This document shows, piece by piece, positions 1 to 63,779 of a stretch of DNA of 64,000 nucleotides. Where the stretch lies: the sequence record PP355766.1; one strand, written 5' to 3'. The notes under the pieces were generated by a model. It had not been told where the DNA came from and ran no database searches. It saw only the letters and a program-made list of their open reading frames with translations. Every line of letters starts with the position of its first letter. The first letter of the stretch is position 1. The position numbers were made by a program, and so were the translations under genes.

Positions 1-3000
1 ACCATCTGCACCATCCTTGCCTCTAGCGTCAAACTCATTGAGAATCCACGCAGTAGGGAAAGCACCTAACTCCACCTTAGCCCGACTTATGACGTTGGTT
101 CCGCCTGCCGCATTTACAGAGAATCTCAGCGAGATATAGTCTGTATTAGCCCCTGTGGTAATAGTTAGGGAGTGTCTCCCTGCCTTGTTAGTCTCCAGGT
201 AATTATTTCTAACAAAGGAGTTACCATCTCCATTGTCAAACTGAAGTACAAACAACCGAGCTTTCGTAGCTTCATCCACTTCCCAAGAAACCGTATACAT
301 AGTGCTCTTCTGAACAGGTATGAAGTACGTTCCAGGGCCAAAGTACGGTTGAGTATACGCATCAGTTTCGGCAGCCCCAGCAGTCACCCTAAATCTTAAC
401 TGGTCGTAGTTTTTACTAATTGAAGAACCACTTCCTTTTGCACTCTGGATAGAGGCCATCCACTCTTTAAATGACCAGAAGTTTTCACCTACACCAGAGG
501 CATCGATTCGCACAGGGTCAGACCAAGTACCAATGATAACATTAGTTCCACCATCAAATGTTGCAGTAGACATCCATAGAGGAGATCCGTCTGGTGGTGA
601 ATCGAACCAATCCGTAGGTTTGTTACCAGTTGGTTTAGCAGGTTTAGTCTCAGAGATACGGAAGATGATATTGGTGTAATTACCTGTCTTACCGTCAGGC
701 CCAATCTCACCTTTTTCACCAACTGCGCGGATTGCTGGACCCCAAACACCGTCAACGTTCTGACGCATGTATAGGTCGCCAGTCTGGAAGGTATCATGCC
801 AGTTACTAGCAGAGCTATCCTTAGACCACTGCACTAAAACTGATTTACCTACTAGACCAATACTATCTGAGTACTCTACTTGATACTCGGTTTTCTCTCC
901 CCCTTCTTCCAGCTTGATCATACTCCACGTAGTCGCTACGTTAAGAGTGAGGGCGGAAGGACGTAGGGTTAAGTAATTCATACCTGTTGGAACTACAAAA
1001 GTACGCTTAACTTTTATAGACGTCCCGGTATTCAGTTCTTCTATGTAAGTGGACTGAGACGAATCTGGGTTAGCCTGCCAGAATATAATATCTCTGGTCT
1101 GTACTTCGCTAGCCGCATCGATATTATAGGTTAGAGTGTAGCGTTTACCAGGAGTCACTGGATGAGAGAACGCACCGCCACCAACATACGGAGTTGCATA
1201 GCACCCTGGAGCCGAGTTATCGGTCCCGGAAGTACGGGTCAAGGTATGCGTTAGCTTCTCGATATCGTTCTTAGATGTGCCGGATTCCGTACCAGTCATT
1301 GCTGCCATCCACTTACGGACTGCGAACAGGTTAGGGTTGATAGTACCGTCCAGACGGACCGGGTTAGACCACGTACCCTGCAGCTGACCGCTAGCGTTCA
1401 TTGTGCCCTTAGTCATCCATAAAGGGCTGCCAACCGGAGGAGCATCACTCCAGCTACCTGGGTTGTTACCAGTAGGTGTTCCTGGCTTAGTATCCTGAAC
1501 GATAAACTTCATTGAAATGTAGTCACCATCAGTACCATCAGCACCGTCTTCACCAACTGCACGAATAGCGCCACCCCAAACCCCATTAACCTGCTGACGC
1601 ATGAAAATGTCGCCAGTTTGGAAACCAGCATGCCAATTAGTAGATCCATCCTTAGACCACTGGACGTTTACAGAGTTACCAGCAGGGCCTTGAGCACCAG
1701 TTGCACCAGTATCACCTTTGTCCCCTTTGTTACCCTGTGGACCTTGTGGACCTTGAGAACCTGTAGCACCAGTTGCACCGGTATCACCTTTCTCCCCATC
1801 CATTTCCAGAGCAAAAATGTGGATATCAGTAACGTAAGCTTTACCTAGGTCACTACCCGAAGACCCGGCCATCTGGATCCACGGCATTGCTATACCGGTA
1901 TTAGAACTGCCAACAGTAAACTCTTTTTCGATGTAGGACCAGCCACCAGGTACTACAGTACCTTGTGCAATAATGAGGGTTCCTTGCCAGTCAACAACTC
2001 CATCGGCCGCCCTTACAATTCGCATCCCCATGTTGATATTGACTTTGGATTCACTAGCCATTATCCACATACCTAGTCTATATTTCTGACCAGCTACTAC
2101 AGGGAATGAGTTAGCATCTTCTATACAGTCCCTAGCAGAGATTACCAAGGCCTTACTGAAGCCTGCGGCTACAATTGTGGCACCAGAAACCCCTTGGACA
2201 CTACCAGTCGACCAGGTACCCTTATTTCCATTCTCGAATGAAGTAGTAATAACGCGATCATAACCTTTTGCAAGGATAGATTTAGTAGTTGCCACTCTGC
2301 GAACCACGGCACCGTAAGTAGGGTGTACCGCACGTAAGTCGACCCAACCGTTGATAACATCAGTACCCGCCGGCATACCTTTTAAAGTATATTTGCCCGC
2401 TGAAGTAATATCAGCATCAAGGTTATTCTTCTCCATAGTACTGAAGGTGCATTCTGAGGTGATATCCTTCGCCCCATAGAATACTTTGAAGTCACCAGAA
2501 CCAGTACTGTAGTTTTGCACGTAACCAGCATAGTTCGCCAGAACTGTGGAACCTTCGTTGGTCAGAAGACCTACGAGAGCGTTAGAACCATCATCTAGGC
2601 GCACAATAGTGATCTGATCGGTAATACCATCACAAACAGCTGTAACTACTACAGACTTCGATGTTTTGAAGTTAGCGGCAGTCAGTGTAGCACCAGTATT
2701 ACTAGTACTTGTTAGTGTAATACTACCACCTTTCTCGTCTTTGGCAGACCACGTAACGTTAGCCGTAGTATTCTGACGGAAAGCCTGGAACAGGATGGTT
2801 GCATCGGACTTCAGTTTACCTTCTGCGTCGTACGTAAACGTCTGACCGAGAGAAGAGAGGCTGAATCCTTTTGCATTATCACCCTTAGCACCTTGCGGGC
2901 CTTGGTTACCCTGTGGACCCTGATTACCCTGAGGCCCTTGTGGACCCTGAGTACCTTGATCCCCCTTTTCACCGATACTGTCGGAAGCTTCTACGCTATA

Positions 3001-8598: not shown

Positions 8599-9209
8599 AG
8601 ACTTTCTCTCAGAACTAGGTTAACCCCGTCGTATACACCATCAACTGTGATCTCTTCGCTGAATGAATCTCCGTTCATTAATTTAGTTTGGAAAAGAATC
8701 CCATTGAAACGTGGTCTCTCGGAGCCGTTGGTAGTGAGCAACAGATCAGGGTATAGATTAAGTGTCCATACTCCTGCTACGTTTTTAAAAGATGTAATCT
8801 TATACACCTTTGGATGTGTGGTTAACTGGAATAAATCACCAGGCTTGGGCTCTCCAGATAGGGAGCTCGTATTGGTAATAACCAGTGTGGAGCCTTTTTG
8901 TCCAGCGGCAATGCGACAGTTGTTCGCATCCCCTCTCACTCGGTAAGACTCATAGTGTGGGAGTATAACGTCGAGATAGCCTCTGGTACGCTTATACTCT
9001 AGAATTGCTGACGAAAGTACAGCATACTCATCGGGAAACATCACAGGATAACTAATGTTAAGACCCCAATACTGAGTGGCTGTTTTAACTTCGTTAACCT
9101 TGCCGTTTGGTAGCTCATCTCTGATCATCGGATCGTTATCGATCAGAGTAGCTTTATCAAACCCAAGGCCGTTATACTGAGGATGTGTAAAGGGATCTGG
9201 TAATCTCAT
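8595..9209 (-). CDS. pb9: Distal tail protein (Dit)
   Basis: 204 aa starting MRLPDP; T5 pb9 size and synteny. Confidence 0.92.
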   Translation of the reverse strand: MRLPDPFTHPQYNGLGFDKATLIDNDPMIRDELPNGKVNEVKTATQYWGLNISYPVMFPDEYAVLSSAILEYKRTRGYLDVILPHYESYRVRGDANNCRIAAGQKGSTLVITNTSSLSGEPKPGDLFQLTTHPKVYKITSFKNVAGVWTLNLYPDLLLTTNGSERPRFNGILFQTKLMNGDSFSEEITVDGVYDGVNLVLRESL

Positions 9210-9236
9210 GTTTTGTTTTCTCCTCTCAATGTTAAT

Positions 9237-9265
9237 ATTATAGTCATATCAAGAAAAATTTTCAA
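9237..9265 (-). promoter_or_regulatory. sigma70-type promoter for pb9-pb3-pb4
   Basis: TTGAAA-N17-TATAAT. Confidence 0.75.
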
Positions 9266-9290
9266 GATAATTTTATAAATTCCAAAAAGA

Positions 9291-9314
9291 AGGGAGGACA
9301 ATTACGTCCTCCCT
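9291..9314 (-). terminator. Intrinsic terminator after pb2
   Basis: AGGGAGGAC/GTCCTCCCT stem plus T-tract on the minus strand. Confidence 0.8.
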
Positions 9315-9323
9315 TTAGTTTAG

Positions 9324-12300
9324 TTAATTCAGGTTCTTTAAGCTCAGCCCTTGTTCATTCAAGGCTAACTCTACAGCTGCCTGGAATGCCGCAGGATTTT
9401 CCAATGCGTACTCCATAAAGCTCTTAGCGTCCATTGCCTGGATGTTCAGATTAACCGGTCTTCTAGCACCACCAGAAGAAGTTTCGGAAGCCACTTTATC
9501 CGCTGGAGTTACCTTGGTAGGCACCATAGGAGTTGCAACTTCCGTTCCATGTTCACCCATCTTATAGGAGACACCTGGGTAGGTATTACCACCTTCTGCA
9601 CGAGGGATAAATCCGTTAGCACTACCTATGCCTTTATCACCGCGAACGTAAGATAGTTCACCTGCGTTTGCACCCATGCTAACGTCTACGTTTTTCTGGC
9701 GCTCACCTAAGGTTAGGTAAGAGGCGGTTTCACCACCAGATCCTGCTATATCGGTCATTCCGGTAGCACTAGATGCCTGAGCTAGAGATAAAGCACCTGC
9801 AAGCCCAGCCGCGATCATCAGAGGAATAGAGAACGGATACGGAACAGCTGTTGCTGCCTGCATTACCGCTACTGCTGTCTGGATAATGATTTGCTTCTTA
9901 GCAGATTCCTGCTGAAGTTTAATCTTCTCCGCTTCCATCTTTTTGATCTTGTTCTTAGACTGCTCAGATTTACCATCACGCTTCTGCTCTGCCGCGATAG
10001 CTGCATCGATTGCCGAAATCTGCTGGTTAGTACCGTAGCTAATCATCTGGCTGACTGTCTGCATACCTGCTGCAATCATGGACGTAGTATCTAGAGATCC
10101 TTGAGAGAACTGGATCATAGCGTTAGCTAAGTTCCCCATACTTTGAGCAGTAGCAGTAGCCTCTGAGTTTAGCTGAGAGAGCTTACTGATAGCCGTGTCG
10201 TATGATGCCATCTGGTTTTCCATATCGGCAAATTTCTTGTCCTCTCCTTCCAGACCAGTAGTAGGCGTATAGTCTGCGCCCAACGACTGTCCTACACGAT
10301 CCATCATCTGTGCGTTACGCTGAGCTTTGAGTGCTGCCATTTGAGCAACGGTATTTGCAATCTCACGACTCCAACGTGCCTGCTCATCAGCGTTACCTTT
10401 CGTGAATTCCTTCATTTCCTGGTAGAACGCTAACTGCTCCTGCATTTTCTGCGATTCGCCCATTAGAGGCTTCATGCTTTGATTGCGCTCAAATTCCTCT
10501 TTACGCATCTCGGCAGTTTTAGCGTTACGATCAAGCTGCTCTTTCCAGATCTCCCGTTCAATCGAAGCAATGTTACGTCTAGACTGTTCAGCTTCCTTCT
10601 CTTTATCAGCCTGAGTCTTCAGCAGAGCTAGTCTATCTTTCTCTACCTGTAGATTTAGTTTAAGGCTCGCCACGTTATACTGGGAATCTGTCATAGTACG
10701 GTTAGAGAGTAGGGCTATCTCCCTGTCAATACCAACTATCTTATCCTTGTAGAACTTCTCCTTCTTAGTAGATTCCATGCCCTGGTTTTTAATCTTGAAC
10801 TCTTCTGTTTCGAGAATAGTTAGTTCCTTTTGTAGGGCTTTGTTGTCCTTATTCGTAGCCAGTACTGCCTGCAGAGCAGCTTTCTTGGACTGGAGCTGTT
10901 GTAGCTCTAGTGCTCTACCTGCTTCTTCCGCCTTATCCTTATTACGAGTAGATGCGTAAACATCTGCTATACGTTTTTCCACTTCCAGCTTAGATTTGGC
11001 TTCGTCCCCCGCAATCTTCTGGTAGTTGGTCATAGCCTTGTAAGCGGTGTTCATTTCCGTTACAGAAGAGTACCCAAGATTCAGATCCTTAGTTAACTGG
11101 TTAGCTTTTTCAGTAGAGCCTCCCGCCAGGGCTTCCACTGCCTTAAGAGCATCCCCCAGGGCTGCTGTGGCCTTAGCCGCCGTATTAGAATCCTGTGCGA
11201 AGTTTTGGATATCATTACCCAAGTCTCCAGCAGTTTTCTTAATATTGTTGTACTCTTTGTTTATGGCAACTGCCCCACCTAGAGCATCTTTGTTGAAGGT
11301 GTAAATCCCGTCACTTGCTTCGACGTTCTGCGATATATTAAGCTGATTAGCTAGGTTAGGGTTTCCTTTCTGCGTTTTAGCTAGTGCAGTGTCTCTAGCG
11401 TCTCTCCACTTCTGGATGGCCCCAGATGAATCCTCTAGTTCCTGCTGCAACTTATATGCTTCTCGTCGCATATCCGCAGTTTCTTGAGTGAACCTCTTGT
11501 TAGCCTCGGAGGCCCCTAGAGTGAAGGAGTTTCCTAGACCCTGGTAGTTGGCACTCACGGCAATCTTAGTAGCCATGTCCATCTTAGATTCGCGCTCTAA
11601 GATATCCTTATTAAGGGCTGCAAGTCTCTTGCTGGCTTCTTCCTTAGCCTTTATAGCGTCATCCAATCCTTTCTGAGATGCTTCGAGGTTCATCACCACG
11701 GCGTTGTTATCTTTAACATCCATCTTGCCGATTGATTCCTTCTGAGCTTCTGCTGCTGCTGAGGAAATAGAGGCCTTAGAGGAATAAAACGCTGCGTTTA
11801 TAGACGCAATAACAGGTCCGAGATACTTAGCTGCTGCCTGCTGAACCTTACGTAATGCAGAGTCTGCGTTCGCAGCAAACTGTTCCCAAGGAGTAGCACG
11901 CAGTGCATCATCAAGATATCCGAAACGCTTAGTAGATTCTGCTACAACTGCGTTTGCATACGCTTGCTGTTTCTGGAACGAGGATAGACTCTGTATGTTA
12001 TAAGTCATACCCGTGTTAGCTGCGTTTAGTTGTTTAACATGTTCGGCGAATGCGTCATTCAGACGGATGGTTACACCCAGTTCGTCCAGAAGTTCGATTT
12101 CCTGCTTAGACACACCCTTGATTACACGGTTGAGTGCATCTGTCATGTCAACACCTAGAGTGGCTGCGGCTCTACGTGCAACTAGAGCAAACTCACCAAT
12201 CTGTTTAGAATCGAAACCATATGCGGCCGCAGTAGACGCCTGGCGCATAGCCTCTTCAAAGGATACAGCATAACCAGTAGCTTCCTGCAGTGCGATTGCT

Positions 12301-36836: not shown

Positions 36837-37175
36837 CTAGAAGCAGATACCACGGCCCCGGCCTACCTCATCCCGATTCTCATCGAAAATGATCACGTTG
36901 GCATTGAACGTGCTACGGTTAACGATCATCTGTATTCCGTCCTTGCCCGGTTCCGGTTCCACCATGAATCCCCAAGTGCCGGAGTCAACCGCCACGGAAT
37001 CAAAATCCTGATTCCGTAACACTGCCGTAACAGTACCCTCCTTTGCAAAGGTCACACTGACACGGCATTCAATAGGCCGTACTTTTTCAGGGGTAACGAT
37101 AGCCGGGGCGCTAACCTCCGCAAGTGCAGCACCTGAAAGCATAGCAAGGCCAAAGCCAACAATAGCGAGTCTCAT
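36837..37175 (-). CDS. Pre-early exported protein (signal-peptide-like N-terminus)
   Basis: MRLAIVGFGLAMLSGAALA-E; CTGGAG RBS before ATG 37175. Confidence 0.75.
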   Translation of the reverse strand: MRLAIVGFGLAMLSGAALAEVSAPAIVTPEKVRPIECRVSVTFAKEGTVTAVLRNQDFDSVAVDSGTWGFMVEPEPGKDGIQMIVNRSTFNANVIIFDENRDEVGRGRGICF

Positions 37176-37319: not shown

Positions 37320-37433
37320 ATGGCTTTTTCAATGTTGGCGCTCGGTTTAGTCGGTTCTATGATGGTTTTGGGCTTTATCGCTTTTTGCGGCTATGCCCTC
37401 TATGATACTTTGTTTAATAAGGAGGCTTTTTAA
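37320..37433 (+). CDS. Membrane microprotein (37 aa)
   Basis: AAAGGAG RBS; single hydrophobic helix; hand-translated. Confidence 0.7.
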   Translation: MAFSMLALGLVGSMMVLGFIAFCGYALYDTLFNKEAF

Positions 37434-37603
37434 TGAGAACTTTGCGCGGTGGTAGTCCCAAAAGCCGTAGCCACAATACTTACCAGTTGAACGTTATTCG
37501 TGATGGTCAGAAGAAAGGCGGTGACGGTGGCGGCGGTGAGTGGGGTTTTCGTGTCATCATGGTTATTATTATGACCCTAGTCTTTTTGCAGAGCTGCCAA
37601 TAA
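37433..37603 (+). CDS. Membrane microprotein (56 aa, C-terminal TM)
   Basis: TAATG coupling; AAGGAGG RBS inside the upstream ORF. Confidence 0.7.
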   Translation: MRTLRGGSPKSRSHNTYQLNVIRDGQKKGGDGGGGEWGFRVIMVIIMTLVFLQSCQ

Positions 37604-37713: not shown

Positions 37714-37835
37714 GAGTGTCGCCGCCCTCCTCCACCGCGTGACCCCTTACTAAAATACCTACCCCAAAATTAAATCGCTCACAGCGCGTTCTAGAGCGCT
37801 TAAAATCGATATCAGCAGATAGTGTTGTCGGGAAA

Positions 37836-37945
37836 TACTGTATAAATATACAGTAGGATAACCTGTTGATAAGTCTGTTGATAACTCGCTACCGATCGAT
37901 TGAGGCGTCAAGCTAATTTACAATTTTGTATAACTCTGGGGATAA
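37836..37945. promoter_or_regulatory. LexA box plus DnaA-like boxes, right (inverted) copy
   Basis: TACTGTATAAATATACAGTA at 37836-37855; TGTTGATAA at 37864 and 37876; TGGGGATAA at 37937. Confidence 0.8.
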
Positions 37946-37977
37946 CTTAAATGATAGTGTTTCTCACTTCCTTTTCG

Positions 37978-38074
37978 AAATGCGAATCGTTCGCATTCGC
38001 ATTCAGCTCGGTAAACGCAAATCATTCTCATTCGCATTCAACTTCTCAAATGCGAATCATTCTCATTCGTATTT
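37978..38074. repeat. Three 27-bp direct repeats with exact 35-bp period (injection-stop-signal region)
   Basis: AAATGCGAATCGTTCGCATTCGCATTC-like copies at 37978, 38013 and 38048. Confidence 0.85.
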
Positions 38075-38105
38075 GCATTTCCGACCCCCGGCCCTTCCTG
38101 CGCTT

Positions 38106-38665
38106 ATGTGCGAATCCGACAATTTGTCAAGCAAAATATTACGTGAGGCTGCTAGGGTATGTGCAAATCCGATGAAAATTTATTTTTACCGCCCTGGGGG
38201 CATGTGCAAATCCGATACTAATATGTGCGTATCCGATAATAATTTTTAGGGGGAAGGCGCGCAGGTTGCTGCGGCGCAGCGGTGGGCGCGAGTCTGGGTG
38301 AGTATGTGCAAATCCGACGGGTATTTTTGAGGGCGGGATAAACGGGGTTAATTGGGGCAATTCGGGAATGATGGGGGCAAGGGGGCAGATAAGGGAAAAT
38401 ATTATGAGTTAAATGGGGGTAAAGGGGTTGACACAGAAAAAATTCCTGTGGCTCTAAAAAACAAGCGAACTCACGGTGACACACCGTGTAAAAAGGCTTG
38501 AAATTTCAGGAGATATTTTATATTCGCAGAATCGAAGATTTTGATCCACAGCTACCGTTTGCTAGTATATATGTGCATATCCGACAAGCGTTTGAGTATG
38601 TGCAAATCCGATGATGATTTTTATATGTGCATATCCGACATAGCTAGAGGTTAGTGCAAATCCGA
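38106..38665. repeat. Nine copies of ATGTGC(A/G)(A/T)ATCCGA
   Basis: Starts at 38106, 38159, 38202, 38223, 38304, 38571, 38598, 38625 and 38653 (last copy partial). Confidence 0.9.
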
Positions 38666-38674
38666 TGATATTTT

Positions 38675-38816
38675 GTGACGCTTAGGACTTAGGCGAATGA
38701 TGTGAGTTTGTGTGAAACTTCGTGAGGACTTTGTGGAGTGACGCTTAGGACTTGGGAGAATAGCGAGGTAGCTAGAATTTGGTGTGAGGACTTCGTGAGA
38801 TGTGTGGAACTTCGTG
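38675..38816. repeat. G/T-rich short repeats
   Basis: GTGACGCTTAGGACTT x2 (38675, 38738); ACTTCGTG x3 (38717, 38790, 38809). Confidence 0.8.
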
Positions 38817-39065
38817 GAATTGTGTGAGTTTCTGGGCAGCTAGCGGGTAGTTTTTGGGTTGGAAAATAACCGCCCTCCCCTTAGGTGTGTAGAAAGAACC
38901 GCCCTGTATAGAAAGATGACTAGAGTTCAACCCTAGAGCCGCGAAACGATGGTGTGTAAGGATTGCCTACTTTTAAACGTGAGTAATCGTGAGTTCATTC
39001 CCACGTTTCCTTTGTTTTCTTTATTGTGTCTTTTATTTTAGTTATAGATCCCCCTATTTCTCCCG

Positions 39066-39177
39066 ATGTAGCCGTGCTAGGCATCGCAGATTGTATCGTA
39101 TGGCTGGTCACTCTTTGTACTCGCTTCGGAACTCCGCGCTACTAAAGTTAGCCATGATAATCTGTGCCTAGCTACAT
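39066..39177 (-). ncRNA. Candidate rod-like hairpin RNA (or DNA cruciform)
   Basis: Nested helices ATGTAGC/GCTACAT, TAGGCA/TGCCTA, CAGATT/AATCTG, ATGGCT/AGCCAT, CTTT/AAAG; promoter upstream; no long ORF. Confidence 0.6.
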
Positions 39178-39209
39178 AAATTTATGAATTGTATGTAATC
39201 TATGAGATT

Positions 39210-39239
39210 ATTATAACACGTGCACAAAATAACTGTCAA
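39210..39239 (-). promoter_or_regulatory. Promoter firing toward the injection-stop zone
   Basis: TTGACA-N18-TATAAT, downstream of the terminator at 39268-39292. Confidence 0.7.
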
Positions 39240-39267
39240 GAACATTTTGTAAGAGTTTGAAAAAGTG

Positions 39268-39292
39268 ACAGGGACTTGGCGAGAGTCCCTGT
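39268..39292 (-). terminator. Terminator ending the early operon
   Basis: ACAGGGACT/AGTCCCTGT stem plus nearby T-tract. Confidence 0.75.
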
Positions 39293-39299
39293 GATTAGC

Positions 39300-40037
39300 T
39301 TAGAGTTGATCTTTCCTTATGAATCTACCTTGGCTTAACATTGCGATGTACAATGCTTCCGGGGAAGTCTCTAGGTGGTCTAACTCTTTAATGTCGAACG
39401 AACCTTTTGGTAACTCGCCAGGCTCGTCATGATCATATAAATACTCGACAGCATCTCCTAGCATGAGAGCATTCCCGATCTTCTTGATCTTCGAGTATCT
39501 CTCTTTTACTAATGCTATTAACGCTAAATCCTCTTTGGTTAAGTTTAACTGTCTAGAGAGTTTAACTGTCGTCTTCGTTATCTGTACAGCAATATCCAGA
39601 ACTGAGGCTTGGTAATCTTTCCAGTCCTCAACCTTTTGAGCGTCACGTTGAAGATGTGGAAAATCGATATAGTCCTGGCATTTTCCATCAGGAATATGGT
39701 AACTGGGGAAGTCTTCTACTGCCTGTTGCCACGTAACTGTCTTCACCTTATCATGCGGATATGGCTCATCCATTATAACGTGGAAGGAGTTGGCCATGAA
39801 TTTCTTCTCAGTAACCGGATACATCTTGTGAACTTTATTCAAGTCCACGTAACCAGGAGCTAACGTTGTTTTCTTAGCATCCTTAGAATAAACAGGCTTG
39901 CCATTCTTCATCTCCGCTGGTCTTAGCTCCCCCGCTATTAGTACCGCGGATTTTTCCTCAAACGTTAGCTCTGAGAAGTTTTTACCTTTGGACTCCTTGG
40001 CTAGGGTGAATATAGTCTTCAGCTTCTCTAGATTCAT
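39300..40037 (-). CDS. Early hypothetical protein
   Basis: 245 aa; coupled operon. Confidence 0.8.
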   Translation of the reverse strand: MNLEKLKTIFTLAKESKGKNFSELTFEEKSAVLIAGELRPAEMKNGKPVYSKDAKKTTLAPGYVDLNKVHKMYPVTEKKFMANSFHVIMDEPYPHDKVKTVTWQQAVEDFPSYHIPDGKCQDYIDFPHLQRDAQKVEDWKDYQASVLDIAVQITKTTVKLSRQLNLTKEDLALIALVKERYSKIKKIGNALMLGDAVEYLYDHDEPGELPKGSFDIKELDHLETSPEALYIAMLSQGRFIRKDQL

Positions 40038-58617: not shown

Positions 58618-58694
58618 TGGCAAACCCCAGGAGACTCGAACTCCTACTGCACGGTTTTGGAGACCGGCGTGCTGTCCAGTAACACTCGGGGAAT
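58618..58694 (-). tRNA. tRNA-Trp(CCA), atypical acceptor stem
   Basis: Anticodon loop CT-CCA-AA, T arm AGGAG-TTCGAGT-CTCCT, encoded CCA; two T:T mismatches in the acceptor stem. Confidence 0.7.
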
Positions 58695-58698
58695 AAAG

Positions 58699-58890
58699 TT
58701 AGCTACCGTGGTAGACAGATACCGTCTTACCATTCTGATTCATAACGTAGGCTACCTCATCTTCTTTCAAGAAGATATGCTGATCAAGACCAGCAATAGA
58801 GATGCTCTTCTGCTTAGGGTTAAACCCAACGCTTGAACCATCGTGAATTTCTTCGCCACCGCTCGGTGACATTACTTTAACTGTTAACAT
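58699..58890 (-). CDS. Hypothetical protein (63 aa)
   Basis: AGGAG RBS. Confidence 0.7.
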   Translation of the reverse strand: MLTVKVMSPSGGEEIHDGSSVGFNPKQKSISIAGLDQHIFLKEDEVAYVMNQNGKTVSVYHGS

Positions 58891-59008
58891 TTGCTTCTCC
58901 TATAGTTTGCCATCTCTGGCTGTTAAGTGACGTCCTGACTATCCTAGAGTCGAGTTCCAGGCAGACGTCGGCACCCCGGACTACATAGGCTCTAGAACAG
59001 CAAATAAT

Positions 59009-59110
59009 TTAAGAGCTAAACATACTAAGACGTAGCGCACGCACACGATCTACGCAGGCTTCCATCTCAGCTAAGAGTGAGAACACTAGTTCTGCATCAA
59101 AGGCTTTCAT
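59009..59110 (-). CDS. Microprotein (33 aa, MKAFDAELVFSLLAEMEAC…)
   Basis: GAGGT RBS; hand-translated. Confidence 0.55.
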   Translation of the reverse strand: MKAFDAELVFSLLAEMEACVDRVRALRLSMFSS

Positions 59111-59209
59111 TGTTGTACCTCTCAAGTAGTATAGATAAAATGGCCTTACCGGCTCCCAGTTCCTTGTTTAATTCCCCGCAACGTCAGGGGACGGTCATTT
59201 TACCGAATT

Positions 59210-59285
59210 TGGAGCGACTAGGGGGAATCGAACCCCACTCAGTACCGCTTGGAAGGCGGACGCTGTAACCCGTACAGTTAATCGC
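59210..59285 (-). tRNA. tRNA-Gly(TCC)
   Basis: Acceptor GCGATTA/TAGTCGC, loop CT-TCC-AA, TTCGATT, CCA. Confidence 0.8.
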
Positions 59286-59288
59286 AAA

Positions 59289-59381
59289 TTATTTTATTAC
59301 GCAAGTGCAACCGCCCGAGAATATAGACCCGTAACACTTGTCGCACATAATGTCTTCTATTTTAAGAACTTTAAATCTCAT
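59289..59381 (-). CDS. Cys-rich microprotein (30 aa)
   Basis: MRFKVLKIEDIMCDKCYGSIFSGGCTCVIK; RBS weak. Confidence 0.45.
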   Translation of the reverse strand: MRFKVLKIEDIMCDKCYGSIFSGGCTCVIK

Positions 59382-59409
59382 AGAGAGTTATTACCTGTAG
59401 TAATATTTA

Positions 59410-59482
59410 TGGTGCTGGCTTCCGGAATTGAACCGGAATTTAACGACAATGTAAACTTAATCACACTGTAACCATAACCAGC
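59410..59482 (-). pseudogene. tRNA-like element: intact acceptor and T arms, degenerate D and anticodon arms
   Basis: GCTGGTT/AGCCAGC-A-CCA; TCCGG-TTCAATT-CCGGA; no pairing anticodon stem. Confidence 0.65.
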
Positions 59483-59488
59483 AAAAAA

Positions 59489-59564
59489 TGGTGCCCCAAG
59501 TAGGAATCGAACCCACGACCTACCGCTTACAAGGCGGTTGCTCTCCCGGCTGAGCTATTGAGGC
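59489..59564 (-). tRNA. tRNA-Thr(TGT)
   Basis: Canonical cloverleaf, CT-TGT-AA, CCA. Confidence 0.95.
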
Positions 59565-59569
59565 AAGAT

Positions 59570-59646
59570 TGGTCTCCCCTAAGTGATTTGAACACTTGAC
59601 CTGACGCTCCCAAAGCGCCCGCTCTGCCAGACTGAGCTAAGGGGAA
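59570..59646 (-). tRNA. tRNA-Pro(TGG)
   Basis: Canonical cloverleaf, TT-TGG-GA, CCA. Confidence 0.93.
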
Positions 59647-59651
59647 GAATA

Positions 59652-59731
59652 TGGCGGAGTTGCTACTTAAAGCGTTTCACGTACTATCGTTGCTCGTCAT
59701 GCTCTAGCAGAATATGACAGCGAAAACCCCG
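59652..59731 (-). ncRNA. CCA-ending small RNA with acceptor-like stem
   Basis: CGGGGTT/AACTCCG followed by CCA; internal GTCAT/ATGAC hairpin; no T arm. Confidence 0.4.
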
Positions 59732-59896
59732 TTATAAAGTATACATACGATTTAACACTTCAGCATTTGGCCGCATAGACTCCGCCTCTTTTTGAAATTG
59801 TTCATCCAGTAATTTCAGGCGTTTTCTAAGCATGTCCTGATCCTTTTCAGTCAGGACGACGTTTTTAGATATTTCAAATAGCTCCTGAAGTGTCAT
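59732..59896 (-). CDS. Microprotein (54 aa, MTLQELFEISKN…)
   Basis: GAGG RBS-like sequence in the tRNA-Leu 3' end; hand-translated. Confidence 0.6.
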   Translation of the reverse strand: MTLQELFEISKNVVLTEKDQDMLRKRLKLLDEQFQKEAESMRPNAEVLNRMYTL

Positions 59897-59900
59897 AGTT

Positions 59901-59986
59901 TGGTACCTCTGGAGGGACTCGAACCCTCAATCATTTAAGCGCCACGTTTTAAGCATGGTGTGTATTTCCAGTTCCACCACAGAGGT
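59901..59986 (-). tRNA. tRNA-Leu(TAA)
   Basis: Class II with long variable arm, CT-TAA-AA, CCA. Confidence 0.93.
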
Positions 59987-59994
59987 AAAATACG

Positions 59995-60333
59995 TTAGCG
60001 TAGCTCTAAGCCCTGGAAGTAGCGAGGGAACGGGCTGCCTACTTCAAAGCTGATCCCCCAGTTGAGTTCCACCAGCTCTGACTTATCCAAAAGCAGGTCA
60101 TTGCCTTCAAAGATGTAACCGTATACAGTTGGGAACATCGCTGCTAGATCTTCCATATTGGAATAAGCATTATGCTCTTCACGGAATTGCTCAAACTCTT
60201 CAAAGAACTTCTCAAGGAAGAACTCTGGTACAATGAACGTTACAACGTCAGTGCTGTCATCGATACGATAGACCGTTGCCTGGAATAAGCCGACACCGAC
60301 CAGGTTGATAGCAGGAGTAGTAAAAATATCCAT
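59995..60333 (-). CDS. Acidic hypothetical protein
   Basis: 112 aa. Confidence 0.75.
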   Translation of the reverse strand: MDIFTTPAINLVGVGLFQATVYRIDDSTDVVTFIVPEFFLEKFFEEFEQFREEHNAYSNMEDLAAMFPTVYGYIFEGNDLLLDKSELVELNWGISFEVGSPFPRYFQGLELR

Positions 60334-60335
60334 TA

Positions 60336-60530
60336 TTAATATACCTTGATTAAAGTGTTGTCGATGGTGTTCAGGAACTTAACTGCTGCATCTCTATTAG
60401 AGAATGTCTCCAGCACGATAATGTTGTTCTCAGGATCACCGTTGCGCACTCGTACCTGGTACGATACGATCACTTCCCAGCGGAACCATAAAGCTCGTGG
60501 ATTATATCGCATAAGAATTTTTTGGTTCAT
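60336..60530 (-). CDS. Hypothetical protein (64 aa)
   Basis: First gene after the promoter. Confidence 0.7.
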   Translation of the reverse strand: MNQKILMRYNPRALWFRWEVIVSYQVRVRNGDPENNIIVLETFSNRDAAVKFLNTIDNTLIKVY

Positions 60531-60561
60531 TAGGTAAGCCCTCTCATTAATTTATACAATT

Positions 60562-60590
60562 ATTATATTATAAATAAGAGCGTTTAGCAA
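60562..60590 (-). promoter_or_regulatory. T5-type early promoter
   Basis: AAAATTCAT-TTGCTA-N17-TATAAT. Confidence 0.85.
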
Positions 60591-60616
60591 ATGAATTTTA
60601 GAACTTTCGGGATATT

Positions 60617-60830
60617 GCCACCCTCAGTCGATGCCACTACTTGAGACGTTATAGGCAATCTATCTCAAGTTGTCTGCCCCATTGCTTTCAGTGATTTCTG
60701 CACGCAGAAATTCTTCTTGACTGGAGGACTTTACCACGTCAAACGGCCGGAAATCGGTGGCTTATTTTATCCTGTCACCCATCACCTGCTTGTCTGAGTT
60801 TAATCAGAGAGCCTGTAACGGGCTACTTGG
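60617..60830 (-). ncRNA. Candidate multibranch ncRNA
   Basis: GCCACC/GGTGGC closes three hairpins (ACTTGAGA/TCTCAAGT, ATTTCTGC/GCAGAAAT, TTGAC/GTCAA); no ORF. Confidence 0.55.
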
Positions 60831-60834
60831 GATT

Positions 60835-60969
60835 TGGAAGTATCAGTTGGATTCGAACCAACGCACCAGCTAACCTAGAGATCACCAGACGTTTCCAAGT
60901 CTGCTCACTAACGGCCAGCCGCTTTACCATGAGCCTTAGGACTATTCAGCTCCATAAGCTATTGATACT
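60835..60969 (-). ncRNA. 135-nt tRNA-like RNA with a branched insert in place of the anticodon loop
   Basis: Acceptor AGTATCA/TGATACT-T-CCA; T arm GTTGG-TTCGAAT-CCAAC; D-like AGCT-TATGG-AGCT; about 85-nt structured central arm. Confidence 0.75.
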
Positions 60970-60976
60970 ATTAATT

Positions 60977-61054
60977 TGGTGCAACCGGTTCGATTTGAAC
61001 GAACGACCCCTGGACTTTCAAACCAGTGCTCTCACCTCGCTGAGCTACAGTTGC
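60977..61054 (-). tRNA. tRNA-Phe(GAA)
   Basis: Cloverleaf, TT-GAA-AG, CCA. Confidence 0.9.
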
Positions 61055-61083
61055 GTAATTCATGCCTGCTCCTTTGAATCAAG

Positions 61084-61180
61084 AAGTCCACCCCGGTCTT
61101 TGGGTCTTTGCAGTACATCACGCTGCTCTGATGTTTGGTGGAACTTGGGAGACTACGTGTTACTCCCCTCACAGACCGGG
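61084..61180 (-). ncRNA. Candidate structured RNA between tRNA-Lys and tRNA-Phe
   Basis: CCCGGTCT/AGACCGGG closing helix with inner ACATCA/TGATGT and GGGAG/CTCCC hairpins. Confidence 0.45.
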
Positions 61181-61229
61181 ATTCCCCGCTATCCATGATG
61201 CTTAACCGATTAGCTGAAGTCCCATAATG

Positions 61230-61305
61230 TGGTAGACCGCCCGGGACTCGAACCCGGAACCTATCGCTTAAAAGGCGAGTGCTCTAACCATTGAGCTAGC
61301 GATCT
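61230..61305 (-). tRNA. tRNA-Lys(TTT)
   Basis: Cloverleaf, CT-TTT-AA, CCA. Confidence 0.95.
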
Positions 61306-61477
61306 ATGGATATGTTATTGTTACTGCACCGTTAAAGAGCTGTAACTCCCCCGTATTGCGGAGGTGAGATAATTGAAAGATATTTAAGTTATACTTCTCA
61401 GCAACTTCGCCCATAGTGGAGACGTAGAAGTTAAACCCCCTTACGTCTACTGTTACCACGTAATCTTTATCTTTCAT
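61304..61477 (-). CDS. Microprotein (57 aa, MKDKDYVVTVDV…)
   Basis: GAGGT RBS; start moved so it does not overlap tRNA-Cys. Confidence 0.6.
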   Translation of the reverse strand: MKDKDYVVTVDVRGFNFYVSTMGEVAEKYNLNIFQLSHLRNTGELQLFNGAVTITYP

Positions 61478-61490
61478 AAGTACCTCGATC

Positions 61491-61564
61491 TGGAGCACCA
61501 TCATGGATTTTAACCATGCTGCGAGGGTTTGCAAGCCTCTGCCTAGTCACTCGGCCAATGATGC
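61491..61564 (-). tRNA. tRNA-Cys(GCA)
   Basis: TT-GCA-AA, U73, CCA; unusual T loop TTAAAAT. Confidence 0.85.
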
Positions 61565-61644
61565 ATTGTTTAATTAGGGCGCACCGGAGTTCCACCGATT
61601 GCTAACGCTTCACCGCAACCTAAGTCGCTGTTCTTACCCTAAAT

Positions 61645-61722
61645 TGGCGGGAGAGGTGAGATTCGAACTCACTGTCATTCGCTTAACAGGCGACCGCCTA
61701 TACCACTTACTGCTTCTCTCCC
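61645..61722 (-). tRNA. tRNA-Asn(GTT)
   Basis: GGGAGAG/CTCTCCC, CT-GTT-AA, G73, CCA. Confidence 0.9.
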
Positions 61723-61727
61723 AAATA

Positions 61728-61771
61728 GATTTAACAACCAAAGCGCTTTCGTCCATTTAAGCTACAAGGCC
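61728..61771 (-). pseudogene. 5'-half tRNA relic (acceptor strand, D arm, TT-GTT-AA loop)
   Basis: GGCCTTG-TA-GCTT-AAATGGACGA-AAGC-G-CTTTGG-TTGTTAA, with no 3' half following. Confidence 0.5.
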
Positions 61772-61782
61772 TTTATGCCGCC

Positions 61783-61827
61783 TGTTGCGTACGCGGGATT
61801 CGAACCCGGATCTCTTTGATTGTCAAA
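61783..61827 (-). pseudogene. 3'-half tRNA relic (T arm plus acceptor strand)
   Basis: TCAAAG-AGATC-CGGG-TTCGAAT-CCCG-CGTACGC-AACA, with no 5' half upstream. Confidence 0.5.
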
Positions 61828-61829
61828 AT

Positions 61830-61917
61830 TGGTGGGGGAAGATGGAGTCGAACCACCCGAGCCGCAATGGCAACGATTTTACAGACCGCTCTGCTACCAC
61901 TTACAGAATATTCCCCC
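61830..61917 (-). tRNA. tRNA-Tyr(GTA)
   Basis: Class II with variable arm, CT-GTA-AA, CCA. Confidence 0.93.
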
Positions 61918-61989
61918 GTATTTGAAGAAGCTCTCGTGAGAACCTCTTCAAATACCTCGTCGAAACGAGATATTTGCTAACTTATTGTG

Positions 61990-62145
61990 ACTAGGGCTGA
62001 CCCTTGTGTCCGAGGATACCTCTAGACGGTCATATCTCTTAGCCCAGAGAGAAACTAGCTTTGGGTGTTTCGGGGTTACTCCTTCTCGGCTCTACTGTTA
62101 ACCCTTATTCGAACTACATACCGAGTTATGAGCGTACTCACTAGT
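61990..62145 (-). ncRNA. Candidate multibranch ncRNA between tRNA-Asp and tRNA-Tyr
   Basis: ACTAG/CTAGT closing; TGAG-TACG-CTCA, CTCGG/CCGAG, CCCA/TGGG and TGACC/GGTCA helices; no ORF. Confidence 0.5.
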
Positions 62146-62151
62146 TTAAAT

Positions 62152-62228
62152 TGGCGCGGCTAACGGGATTCGAACCCGTGGCTCCGACGTGACAGGCCGG
62201 TATGTTGACCGCTGAACACCATAGCCGC
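62152..62228 (-). tRNA. tRNA-Asp(GTC)
   Basis: Cloverleaf, CT-GTC-AC, G73, CCA. Confidence 0.95.
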
Positions 62229-62236
62229 TTAATTTG

Positions 62237-62350
62237 TTATTCCGGTTCGTATTCCATTAAGTCGTCTGACTCACAAGTTGGACACTCCCAATGGCATTCA
62301 CTTAACTCACCACAATCGGAACAAATGTATAACTTAACTTCATCTTCCAT
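62237..62350 (-). CDS. Rubredoxin-like Zn-ribbon microprotein (37 aa)
   Basis: MEDEVKLYICSDCGELSECHWECPTCESDDLMEYEPE; GAGG RBS; first after the promoter. Confidence 0.7.
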   Translation of the reverse strand: MEDEVKLYICSDCGELSECHWECPTCESDDLMEYEPE

Positions 62351-62380
62351 TTGCTTTTCCTCTTTCGTTTCAATATAAAT

Positions 62381-62409
62381 ATTATACTAAATTTCAGGGT
62401 ACTAGGCAA
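62381..62409 (-). promoter_or_regulatory. T5-type promoter driving the Asp-Tyr-Asn-Cys-Lys-Phe RNA operon
   Basis: AAAAATTCAT-TTGCCT-N17-TATAAT. Confidence 0.85.
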
Positions 62410-62421
62410 ATGAATTTTTCA

Positions 62422-62637
62422 TTAATCGTCTTCTTCGTCCCATGAGAGGGAGTGCATGAAGATCGGTAGAACTGTAGGTTCTACGTCAAGCGACGGGTAG
62501 AAGTAAGTTTTACCTTGAGACAGGTCAATGAACGTAGGGGTTCTACCCTCCTGCATGTGTTCATCAACCTTGTCTAGGGCGTCGTTTAACAGTTCGAAGC
62601 AGTCAGTATTCGCTCCGCAAACAACGATAAAATCCAT
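62422..62637 (-). CDS. Acidic hypothetical protein
   Basis: 71 aa. Confidence 0.7.
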   Translation of the reverse strand: MDFIVVCGANTDCFELLNDALDKVDEHMQEGRTPTFIDLSQGKTYFYPSLDVEPTVLPIFMHSLSWDEEDD

Positions 62638-63011
62638 TAACGACCCCCGTTCGGGAAACCGGAGGCAAGCAGGAAGCGAACAACGTCTTCCAGCGACGGG
62701 CCTTCTCCATCTTCTTCCAGATGGAAAGGCAGAATAGCGTACTGCATGTCAGCTGGTGCTACCGGGGTGAAGGTAGGCTCTGCGGGAGCTTCTGCCATGA
62801 ACACTGCGGTTCCGTCAACCAGACGATCGATCGCTTCACAGACTTCTAGCTGTTCTTCGATCTTGGCCTCGCGTTCGCGCATCAGAGCCAGCAGTTCAGT
62901 GCGGTATTCTTCGATACGGCGGTCTAGAGACTCGATGTTATTGGACAGGTTATCCTGTACAATCATCAGGCGGACTACAGCAGAATTTCCATTAGTTGGT
63001 CGTGTAAACAT
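62637..63011 (-). CDS. Coiled-coil hypothetical protein
   Basis: 124 aa. Confidence 0.75.
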   Translation of the reverse strand: MFTRPTNGNSAVVRLMIVQDNLSNNIESLDRRIEEYRTELLALMREREAKIEEQLEVCEAIDRLVDGTAVFMAEAPAEPTFTPVAPADMQYAILPFHLEEDGEGPSLEDVVRFLLASGFPNGGR

Positions 63012-63031
63012 GATATTTCCTCGATTGATTA

Positions 63032-63304
63032 TTAGATAAAGTCGCCGGTAGAGACTACCAGTTTAATGCTTTTACGGAAGATTTCGTGCATACCGTCGTG
63101 AACCATTACTGTCCCGACCAGTTTTGGAAGGTAGACTTCCACATCAATATTACCATATGGCATGGCGTGCTCGTCAGTAAGTTTAGTCCATAACTCCGGC
63201 TGAAGCTCGCAGTTATAGAACACCATCCATTCATGATCACCATCCCATCCGTCCCAGTTAAGAACCAGTGCGGATTCAATACCTGTTGCAGTAACCTTTG
63301 ACAT
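63032..63304 (-). CDS. Hypothetical protein
   Basis: 90 aa; GAGGAG RBS. Confidence 0.75.
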   Translation of the reverse strand: MSKVTATGIESALVLNWDGWDGDHEWMVFYNCELQPELWTKLTDEHAMPYGNIDVEVYLPKLVGTVMVHDGMHEIFRKSIKLVVSTGDFI

Positions 63305-63335
63305 TTGCTAACTCCTCTCGTTAATTTATGAATCT

Positions 63336-63364
63336 ATTATAGCAATTATAAGAGCGTTTAGCAA
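63336..63364 (-). promoter_or_regulatory. T5 PN25-like promoter
   Basis: TTGCTA-N17-TATAATAGATTCATAAATT. Confidence 0.9.
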
Positions 63365-63542
63365 ATGAATTTTTGAATTATCCGCTCCGAAGAGCGGTAA
63401 TCCAGGCTTGCAGCTGTTAGTTACACTTGGTTTGAAGTTGTCTAGGACATTAACTAGAGGTTGATGGCCTCCCCGTTTCTGCAACTAACATTTCACAGCT
63501 TCTCGGACGTTTGACGGCCCTGACCGAAGTCTCACTGTAAAT

Positions 63543-63618
63543 TGGTACTTGCTGCTGGTTTCGAACCAGCTACCCTCGCCGTGTAAAGACGATGCTCTCC
63601 CGATTGAGCTAAGCAAGT
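63543..63618 (-). tRNA. tRNA-Val(TAC)
   Basis: Cloverleaf, TT-TAC-AC, CCA. Confidence 0.95.
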
Positions 63619-63621
63619 ATT

Positions 63622-63698
63622 TGGTGGTCAATAGTGGATTCGAACCACTGTAGTCTCACGTATGAAGCGAGTGCATAAACCATCTCTGCCAACTGACC
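63622..63698 (-). tRNA. tRNA with CAT anticodon (Met elongator or Ile2)
   Basis: Cloverleaf, TT-CAT-AC, G1-C72 paired, CCA. Confidence 0.9.
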
Positions 63699-63703
63699 TT
63701 ATT

Positions 63704-63779
63704 TGGTACTCCGAACTGGACTCGAACCAGTGACCTAACGATTATCGGTCGTTTGCTCTACCAACTGAGCTATCGAAGC
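63704..63779 (-). tRNA. tRNA-Ile(GAT)
   Basis: Cloverleaf, CC-GAT-AA (C33), CCA. Confidence 0.92.

Follow-up and report, generated by a model that had tools for sequence, protein, structure and literature searches.

A 64,000-nucleotide (nt) stretch of DNA from sequence record PP355766.1 (hereafter the window, meaning this stretch at its full length) carries, at positions 39066-39239 on the minus strand, a promoter directed into a long, rod-like hairpin. This hairpin unit is most likely a non-coding RNA gene, one of a family common to the T5-like phages (Demerecviridae), and most likely represents an undescribed RNA family with no match in Rfam. This reading is built on the promoter match, the fold, a position conserved across the family, covariation, and a cassette-like variability of the hairpin interior. 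That the unit functions as RNA is judged quite probable from these features; the full statement, that its product is a stable, trans-acting and protein-binding RNA, stands at about even chances, with transcription, transcript ends, stability, mode of action and partner all inferred.

Positions 38600-39400 of the window are 100% identical to the record of Klebsiella phage vB_Kpn_AM_K4 (PP355766.1; Sugarlandvirus, Demerecviridae), with equal coordinates, and 77 further Klebsiella T5-like phages show 80-94% identity to vB_Kpn_AM_K4 over the same interval. The reference relative is the best annotated one, phage Sugarland (Demerecviridae, Sugarlandvirus), whose coordinates equal those of the window minus 27,966. 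The hairpin unit and the element preceding it comprise, in the leftward direction of transcription:

39268-39292, minus strand: terminator-like hairpin closing the leftward early operon (9-bp stem with 5 G-C pairs, then a T-rich run).
39210-39239, minus strand: sigma-70 promoter (TTGACA at 39239-39234, 18-nt spacer, TATAAT at 39215-39210, TG one base upstream of the -10).
39197-39209, minus strand: palindrome AATCT-CAT-AGATT, directly after the -10 and spanning the predicted start at ~39203.
39178-39203, minus strand: A/U-rich leader with a small hairpin (called P2 in relatives).
39066-39177, minus strand: irregular, unbranched rod of 112 nt (P3), with an outer 7-bp helix AUGUAGC/GCUACAU.
39093-39155 (approximate, within a few nt), minus strand: hypervariable rod core, replaced by unalignable sequence in related Klebsiella phages.
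39001-39065, minus strand: G-run GGGGG (39055-39051) followed by an A-rich tail, the equivalent of a short hairpin (P4) that is terminator-like in some relatives.

The promoter scores 12/12 and is the sole site of that quality on both strands of the window, where eight others reach 11/12; its -35 starts 29 nt past the terminator-like hairpin at 39292-39268. A preliminary description of this DNA had proposed a separate TTGACA/TATAAT promoter after the early-operon terminator, and the 12/12 match with its TG-extended -10 bears this out. With the transcription start placed 7 nt after the -10, at about 39203, the rod would begin some 27 nt further on, in keeping with the approximately 25 nt given in that description. 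The palindrome that spans the predicted start could be either a DNA operator or a 5' hairpin; T5 has an equivalent, AACTC-TAT-GAGTT, at the same place, with both halves changed together. The promoter is conserved in Klebsiella, Salmonella and Escherichia T5-like phages, and a search for further copies of the promoter and leader in the 64-kb window returned none, the unit being single-copy. Promoter and leader are also much better conserved than the product of the gene upstream of them, which diverges strongly (~30% protein identity between genera), and they thus form a conserved island between two variable stretches, the upstream gene and the rod core.

The rod, folded as RNA, reaches -34.8 kcal/mol with a z-score of -2.74, and 2 of 200 shuffled sequences fold equally well (z is -3.7 for the inner 97 nt). 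Taken alone, it is modestly beyond chance; it is the comparative evidence that makes the case convincing. The irregular rod of the preliminary description is recovered in this fold except at its tip, where a 4-bp CGGA/UCCG helix had been drawn: such a helix would leave a 2-nt loop, which is sterically impossible, and the apex instead consists of 2 bp around a 4-nt loop. The outer helix is retained in phage K7_rec11 as AUGAAGC/GCUUCGU.

Conservation of the unit extends well beyond the genus. A distant BLAST search with 39030-39300 matched 195 phage records, the match outside Klebsiella being limited to the promoter and the first transcribed bases; in Salmonella and Escherichia T5-like records that are numbered from the genome end, it lies ~10-11 kb from that end. 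A 20-nt stretch covering the -10 and the start region was found in about 30 T5-like contigs from public viral and metagenome collections, and all of these have the same architecture, namely a TG-extended TATAAT promoter followed by the small hairpin P2, the long hairpin P3, the short hairpin P4 with its G-run, and an A- or U-rich stretch. In Sugarlandvirus, Epseptimavirus and Tequintavirus alike, the unit points leftward and occupies the gap that separates the terminal repeat from the early operon's last gene. T5 itself (NC_005859) carries a diverged copy on the minus strand at ~10,600-10,880, with TTGACA-17-TATCAT and TG and a hairpin z-score of -6.3, where nothing is annotated. When this T5 region was used as query, 436 records matched at least part of it and 140 covered at least 80% of it. 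More distant relatives, from Pectobacterium and Vibrio, were found via the A1 protein. In the same gap, Pectobacterium phage DU_PP_V has TTTACA-17-TATAAT with TG, a small hairpin, a 75-nt near-perfect hairpin (z -6.3) and an A-rich tail, and Vibrio phage 70E37.1, whose A1 protein is 33% identical to that of the window, has TTGACT-18-TATAAT with TG, a small hairpin and a hairpin of ~124 nt (z -3.0). The base of the Vibrio stem, CUCUAGAUG...CAUCUAGAG, resembles the CUCUAGG...CCUAGAG of the Salmonella and Escherichia types. Over the family, Pectobacterium included, the hairpin measures 75-128 nt.

Within this conserved frame, the interior of the hairpin is exchanged. Klebsiella phages align well over promoter and leader, over the outermost ~20 nt of either rod arm and over the tail, and fail to do so in the central ~60 nt of the rod; the non-coding DNA downstream of the rod keeps 86-91% identity among Klebsiella types, the rod core being at background. 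Hairpins were sorted into four Klebsiella types (K), four Salmonella/Escherichia types (S), and the single types T1, E1 and T5. Each of these 11 mutually unalignable interiors forms one unbranched hairpin of 95-128 nt, with z-scores of -2.7 to -7.6, and the 3' arm exceeds the 5' arm by 7-16 nt in every type. Some short resemblances occur at the apex: in K3, S1, S2 and S3 (extracted loci L006, L009, L012 and L017), the apical loop is closed by a G-C pair and starts with GAC, despite unalignable arms; an apical GACCGA is common to one Klebsiella and one Escherichia phage; and the 5-mer GCGAC is present in 6 of the 11 types.

Covariation was found in three independent alignments, and its agreement over independent lineages is supportive of a conserved fold; the alignments are small and their sequences related, so that the numbers fall short of formal proof. 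In the small leader hairpin P2 (S and T1 types), 3 of 7 pairs are changed on both sides, with a score of 0.156 against 0.05 in shuffled alignments (reached in 0 of 500) and 0-0.011 in slid controls. In the S-type rods, 10 of 36 pairs are compensatory, all of them in the upper stem (score 0.25 vs 0.13 shuffled, 0/500), and 91.1% of cells are paired vs 83.1% in shuffles (0/500). The T5-type rods, with 67 pairs, show 3 compensatory pairs, 2 changed to G-U, and one break. In clusters of near-identical sequences, variable columns are about eight times rarer among paired positions (16/1156) than among unpaired ones (74/682). The preliminary description had named covariation analysis as a check, and compensatory changes among relatives are what it returned.

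These data bear on the simplest alternative, that the hairpin is a functionless by-product, a recombination scar or leftover palindrome beside an orphan promoter. In its favour, the region upstream of the promoter is a hot spot of gene replacement and homing-endonuclease insertion. The architecture is nonetheless kept from Vibrio to Klebsiella phages, the helices co-vary and their paired columns resist change to the extent just given, and promoter and leader have changed far less than the neighbouring protein (~30% identity), which together make a by-product scarcely credible.

Compensatory changes alone cannot distinguish between the two strands, and for this reason each strand was folded separately. 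Pair-keeping changes to G-U number 6 on the sense strand vs 2 on the antisense strand, A-C mismatches 1 vs 4, and the summed consensus energies are -236.6 vs -226.5; the sense hairpin is the more stable one in 8 of 10 types. (A first within-type count of G-U against A-C changes, 6:0, was biased, the sense strand alone having been folded, and was replaced by the 6:2 and 1:4 given here.) Taken together, a transcript is favoured over DNA, roughly threefold, because of this strand bias, a promoter that always points into the hairpin, a leader hairpin that co-varies as well, and a terminator behind the rod in some lineages. The competing possibility is a DNA hairpin or cruciform whose base is conserved and whose centre varies, and which a protein would recognise in single-stranded or supercoiled DNA, the promoter then serving only to unwind the region. 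Both strands of the rod do fold about equally well as DNA (z -3.43 for the minus strand and -3.69 for the plus strand, the latter slightly better in the window phage), the stem base is a conserved inverted motif, and the compensatory changes fit either strand. Cruciform extrusion should, however, be unfavourable given the many bulges and a 3' arm longer by 7-16 nt; moreover, the small P2 hairpin co-varies too, the one-sided changes favour the transcribed strand, and the promoter is directed into the hairpin even in very distant phages. A role as DNA is thus considered highly unlikely.

If the unit is transcribed, as the RNA reading holds, where the transcript ends becomes the next question, for which two further features are relevant:

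38920-38936, minus strand: weak terminator-like hairpin (7-bp stem with 3 G-C pairs), a possible 3' end ~290 nt from the predicted start.
38260-38900, minus strand: C-rich, G-poor stretch of the leftward transcript (C/G of 1.2-6.6 in 80-nt windows).

The A-rich tail announced in the preliminary description is present: A and T make up about three quarters of 39065-39001, with A prevailing on the transcript strand (~77% A+T in 39001-39050). The rod-tail region includes a stretch, GGGGGAUCU, common to the window, T5 and phage pork27. In the window phage, no U-tract was seen behind the G-run equivalent to P4. The relatives differ in this respect, as the S4 type has a clear intrinsic terminator directly behind the rod (14-bp stem and U-rich run), and the S1-S3 and E1 types a weaker 7-bp stem with an interrupted U-rich run, and the Klebsiella and T5 copies lack a good terminator at this place. 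Further downstream, the stretch 38260-38900 is a plausible zone of Rho-dependent termination, as judged from its C-rich, G-poor and presumably untranslated RNA; the plus strand has a GC skew of +0.233 over 38000-38999.

The absence of any open reading frame (ORF) above 15 codons, also claimed beforehand, did not hold once GTG and TTG starts were counted: two ORFs, of 38 and 52 amino acids, lie on the transcript strand at 38995-39111 and 38772-38930; with other sequence filling the rod interior of relatives, conservation of these ORFs is impossible. Several deposited annotations of relatives (L006, L009 and others) place small plus-strand ORFs of 30-50 codons over the hairpin and repeat region, which are probably spurious for the same reason. 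The P4 of S and E types (e.g., L009, L017, L011) overlaps an 8-codon ORF starting with MKWG, with a possible Shine-Dalgarno-like stretch upstream; a conserved gene was considered here and rejected, no consistent frame being found in the K, T1 and T5 types, and P4 was treated as conserved at the nucleotide level.

The region downstream of the promoter leads into the terminal repeat, where the first genes to be met are:

36837-37175 and beyond, minus strand: leftward pre-early genes, beginning ~1.8 kb downstream.
37320-37603, plus strand: two small rightward genes inside the terminal repeat.

The rod could accordingly be conceived as the leader of a longer leftward transcript, either a processing or stabilising site of the RNase III type or an antitermination structure comparable to put. 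Polymerase reading on into the terminal repeat would then transcribe the leftward pre-early genes anew or produce RNA antisense to the rightward genes at 37320-37603. Structures immediately downstream of a promoter would suit such a role, as would the pre-early genes ~1.8 kb further on and the lack of a strong terminator behind the rod in the window phage, and a long bulged helix is typical of stems that resist RNase III or are processed by it. Against this, 1.8 kb of repeat-rich DNA without conserved genes would have to be crossed before any gene, the C-rich untranslated RNA should provoke Rho termination, the S4 type has a strong terminator and the S and E types have terminator-like hairpins, and, in the linear genome, no promoter of this kind adjoins the right-hand repeat copy. 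A long leader is therefore viewed as improbable.

The position of the unit relative to the terminal repeat raises a different alternative. In Sugarland, the annotated terminal repeat spans 1-10138, from which the repeat end in the window is placed by homology at about 38104. The window follows the T5 gene order, with dmp, A1 and A2 on the minus strand within the repeat, then a gap of 1.7 kb without conserved genes, then the long leftward early operon (last gene at 39300-40037, minus strand). By homology to Sugarland, the rod would thus lie in the unique, second-step part of the genome, ~960 bp past the repeat end, and therefore be present once per genome. The distance between unit and repeat end is 0.4-0.7 kb in T5, Sepoy, pork27 and saus132, and wherever repeats are annotated the unit is found 0.4-1 kb past the repeat end. 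The preliminary description had put the element at the boundary between first-step-transfer and second-step-transfer DNA; with this offset of ~960 bp, it is not at the injection-stop site. It had also stated that the promoter fires toward stop-signal repeats, and this is correct as to direction, since these repeats lie on its leftward side:

38105-38677, plus strand: eight copies of a repeat sharing the core GTGCNNATCCGA, beginning approximately at the inferred repeat end.

The GTGCNNATCCGA repeats suggest a protein-binding array conserved across genera, as predicted from sequence; the reverse complement of their commonest core form occurs three times in T5 just beyond the repeat (L013, ~2300-2500). 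Other repeats are clustered nearby, with three tandem 35-nt units at 37978-38082, just inside the inferred repeat end, and G-run repeats at 38343-38441. An array of DNA-binding sites built on a CTAG motif and including the stem base was envisaged and set aside, the motif being enriched in the non-coding stretch of T5 and not in the Klebsiella, Vibrio or Pectobacterium phages. A block of ~50 nt that follows the hairpin unit by 60-100 nt in T5 (L013, 2560-2610) and equally in Salmonella and Escherichia phages is better conserved than the unit itself: as positions 1-50 of the T5 query, it is 94-100% identical in nearly all those listed Salmonella/Escherichia records, among the 436, that match only that stretch, and a related stretch, GAUGAUACA, is present in the Pectobacterium phage.

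What may matter at such a location is not a free RNA but a cis-acting unit at the repeat-proximal edge, where leftward transcription, or an RNA-DNA hybrid at the G-run and A/T-rich tail, would prime DNA synthesis, open the repeat-rich region or assist concatemer processing at the repeat end, the hairpin shaping or stalling the nascent RNA. Several observations fit: the position fixed at 0.4-1 kb past the repeat end in every phage examined, the conserved G-run then A/T-rich stretch behind the rod, the highly conserved non-coding DNA downstream, the repeats crowded into the interval from the element to the repeat end, and the want of a tight terminator in the window phage and T5. The GC skew, on the other hand, does not switch at the locus (the cumulative skew falls steadily on both sides, with a local excursion over the repeats only), and the transcript past the tail, being C-rich and G-poor, would disfavour stable hybrids. 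In several lineages, terminator-like P4 hairpins directly follow the rod, suggesting an intended end of transcription, T5 origins lie near the genome centre according to published electron microscopy (as cited in the Davison preprint, 10.1101/866236), and the hypervariable apex would be left without a reason. A cis-acting role is on this evidence regarded as unlikely.

Several points weigh against a trans-acting RNA as well. A covariance model built on the S types (R1) gives E-values of 0.5-10 on the other types, mixed with chance matches; a single model not recovering all types, kinship therefore rests on synteny, flanking homology and architecture. The strand asymmetry is based on few events, a static count of G-U pairs gives about the same number for both, and the window's own copy folds slightly better on the complementary strand (-35.5 vs -32.8). 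There is no convincing terminator directly behind the rod in the window phage and T5, a DNA operator is one possible reading of the palindrome that spans the predicted start, a search of the window for an antisense target of the rod returned none, and no start-site or small-RNA mapping was found in the literature for any T5-like phage.

With these points taken into account, the preferred reading, a stable RNA acting in trans, can be laid out as follows. A very strong host-type promoter would arrive in the cell with the earliest part of the second-step DNA and, firing leftward, would produce a short leader with a small hairpin, then the long bulged hairpin, the G-run and a tail rich in A or U. 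In some lineages, the terminator-like hairpin would probably set the 3' end; for the window phage, the likelier course is that Rho ends transcription within the C-rich untranslated RNA, which is then shortened as far as the rod. What results would be a structured RNA, abundant and resistant to nucleases, that binds a protein and so works in trans (scaffold, decoy or sponge), with the conserved stem base and leader as the recognised part and an apex free to diverge, or driven to do so. A more specific and rather doubtful proposal is that the hypervariable apex on its conserved base is a specificity module under diversifying selection, either a decoy for, or an escaping target of, a host immune sensor that detects structured phage RNA, or a determinant of self and non-self among co-infecting T5-like phages. 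In the latter version, co-infecting phages would tell their own genome from that of a rival during second-step transfer, replication or packaging. In both versions, the two-step lifestyle by which this phage family is defined would gain its first assigned RNA component.

T5 is a classic model phage in which 1-2 kb of non-coding DNA at the first-step/second-step boundary still awaits an explanation. A real RNA gene at this place, of which T5 carries a copy, would mean an unannotated, family-wide and probably very abundant transcript, with the switch from pre-early to early expression, the countering of host defence and the handling of the terminal repeat as candidate roles. The combination of a conserved base with a swapped apex would also be an unusual case of modular RNA evolution. 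In practical terms, several hundred Demerecviridae annotations, many of them for therapy candidates, currently have nothing or spurious small ORFs at the unit.

As for the wider setting, window positions 1-27966 hold late genes of the same T5-like genome, which indicates a circular permutation of the record and a collapse of its terminal repeats into one; these late genes run into dmp at ~27,967. PP355766.1 as a whole measures 288,685 bp and is labelled Straboviridae, yet its first 64 kb are a T5-like Sugarlandvirus genome, and the record probably joins two different phage genomes. The minus strand of the window has 13 clustered transfer RNA (tRNA) genes at 58618-63779, as expected in a T5-like phage, and a tRNA and transfer-messenger RNA scan gave no such gene at the hairpin locus. 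The genes neighbouring the hairpin unit belong, in Pfam and PHROGs, to families of unknown function only, and a search for related loci with the neighbouring protein as query returned Sugarland alone. Three phages have a homing-endonuclease gene, of HNH or GIY-YIG type and in some cases fragmentary, precisely at the junction of the last early-operon gene with the hairpin promoter, at the following coordinates of the extracted loci:

L009 972-1328: insertion in Sepoy.
L006 975-1364: insertion in K7_rec11.
L012 972-1329: insertion in JLBYU40.

In the full-text literature that was searched, no description of a transcript or RNA gene at the unit was found; the older, subscription-only T5 literature lay outside this search, and a prior description there is possible. 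The boundary repeats of T5 have been described in the Davison preprint (10.1101/866236), where Repeat Region 3 (9194-10409) stops short of the T5 copy at ~10,600-10,880. Of the boundary, the BF23 paper (PMC10644984) mentions no more than that it has a long non-coding region; promoters of T5 have been studied by primer extension (PMC7472727), with no coordinates given for the promoter of the hairpin unit; and RNA sequencing of Bas33 (PMC13250531) was reported per gene only.

Among known RNAs, 6S RNA comes to mind first, as a rod-like non-coding RNA with its own sigma-70 promoter and a mode of action by protein binding that could apply here too, the abundance of the phage RNA being a prediction. 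The preliminary description had indeed proposed a stable small RNA from a dedicated promoter, possibly 6S-like. Its core, a structured RNA, is upheld by the conserved unit, the compensatory changes and the lean toward the transcribed strand; the likeness to 6S is not. A decoy for a polymerase, RNase III or a defence sensor, a replication primer and a DNA cruciform, which it had named as well, are kept as candidates. 6S RNA, which binds the sigma-70 holoenzyme and serves it as template for a product RNA, is ~180 nt long, compared with ~112 nt for the rod, and has a large central bubble that imitates an open promoter, whereas the rod has bulges of 1-7 nt and a hypervariable apex, and no type of the family has a large central bubble. 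A permissive cmscan of Rfam 15 with the window and seven relatives' loci likewise gave no 6S match, only chance-level matches to unrelated families (E 1.6-3.3).

The antisense RNAs of plasmids, such as CopA of R1 and RNA I of ColE1, are closer in shape: they too are long bulged hairpins in which the shape is kept and the sequence near the apex differs, and both of their strands fold, as here. In CopA and RNA I, sequence differences between relatives set specificity. The hairpin unit differs in belonging to a lytic phage and in having no convincing opposing promoter across the rod: no plus-strand promoter of at least 9/12 was found in 37806-39726, the nearest (9/12) being 1.3 kb away at 37778-37806, in a search by consensus match only, without which transcription is still possible. 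Nor did a search confined to the phage window give a complementary site or a second copy of the rod in either orientation, beyond chance 9-12-mers; a conserved single-stranded seed with its complementary target, as expected of a trans-acting base-pairing small RNA, was accordingly not found there. HK022 put RNA and similar antitermination RNAs share with the unit the stem-loops formed in nascent RNA right after a strong phage promoter; here, the structure is much longer, no gene follows within 1.8 kb on the transcript strand, and terminator-like hairpins are present in several lineages. Origin primer RNAs, such as ColE1 RNA II or those of the promoter-containing origins of T4 and T7, likewise combine a strong promoter, a structured RNA, a G-run and an A/T-rich stretch. 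A promoter followed by an A/T-rich region, a weak criterion for an origin, is found at the hairpin unit; there is no skew switch there, in contrast, and T5 origins are reported near mid-genome.

Two DNA elements also invite comparison. The PeSLs (promoter-early stem-loop cassettes) of T4-type phages resemble the order seen at 39292-39210, with a terminator stem-loop and, after it, an early promoter bordering a region of gene shuffling, the upstream genes here being hyperplastic; PeSLs are present many times per genome and flank ORFs, however, whereas the hairpin unit is single-copy and drives a long hairpin without an ORF. The attC sites of integrons have a conserved inverted base, a variable centre and an imperfect hairpin with unpaired bases. 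They act as single-stranded DNA together with an integrase and gene cassettes, in contrast to a promoter directed into the hairpin and a co-varying leader hairpin, with no integrase context seen. Finally, the cabRNA (CBASS-activating bacteriophage RNA) is a structured phage RNA sensed by the cyclase of CBASS (cyclic-oligonucleotide-based antiphage signalling system), and derives from within coding genes of a staphylococcal phage. The hairpin unit differs in its dedicated promoter and conserved base; the parallel lies in a phage RNA whose shape would be relevant to host immunity, and this would explain an apex under diversifying pressure.

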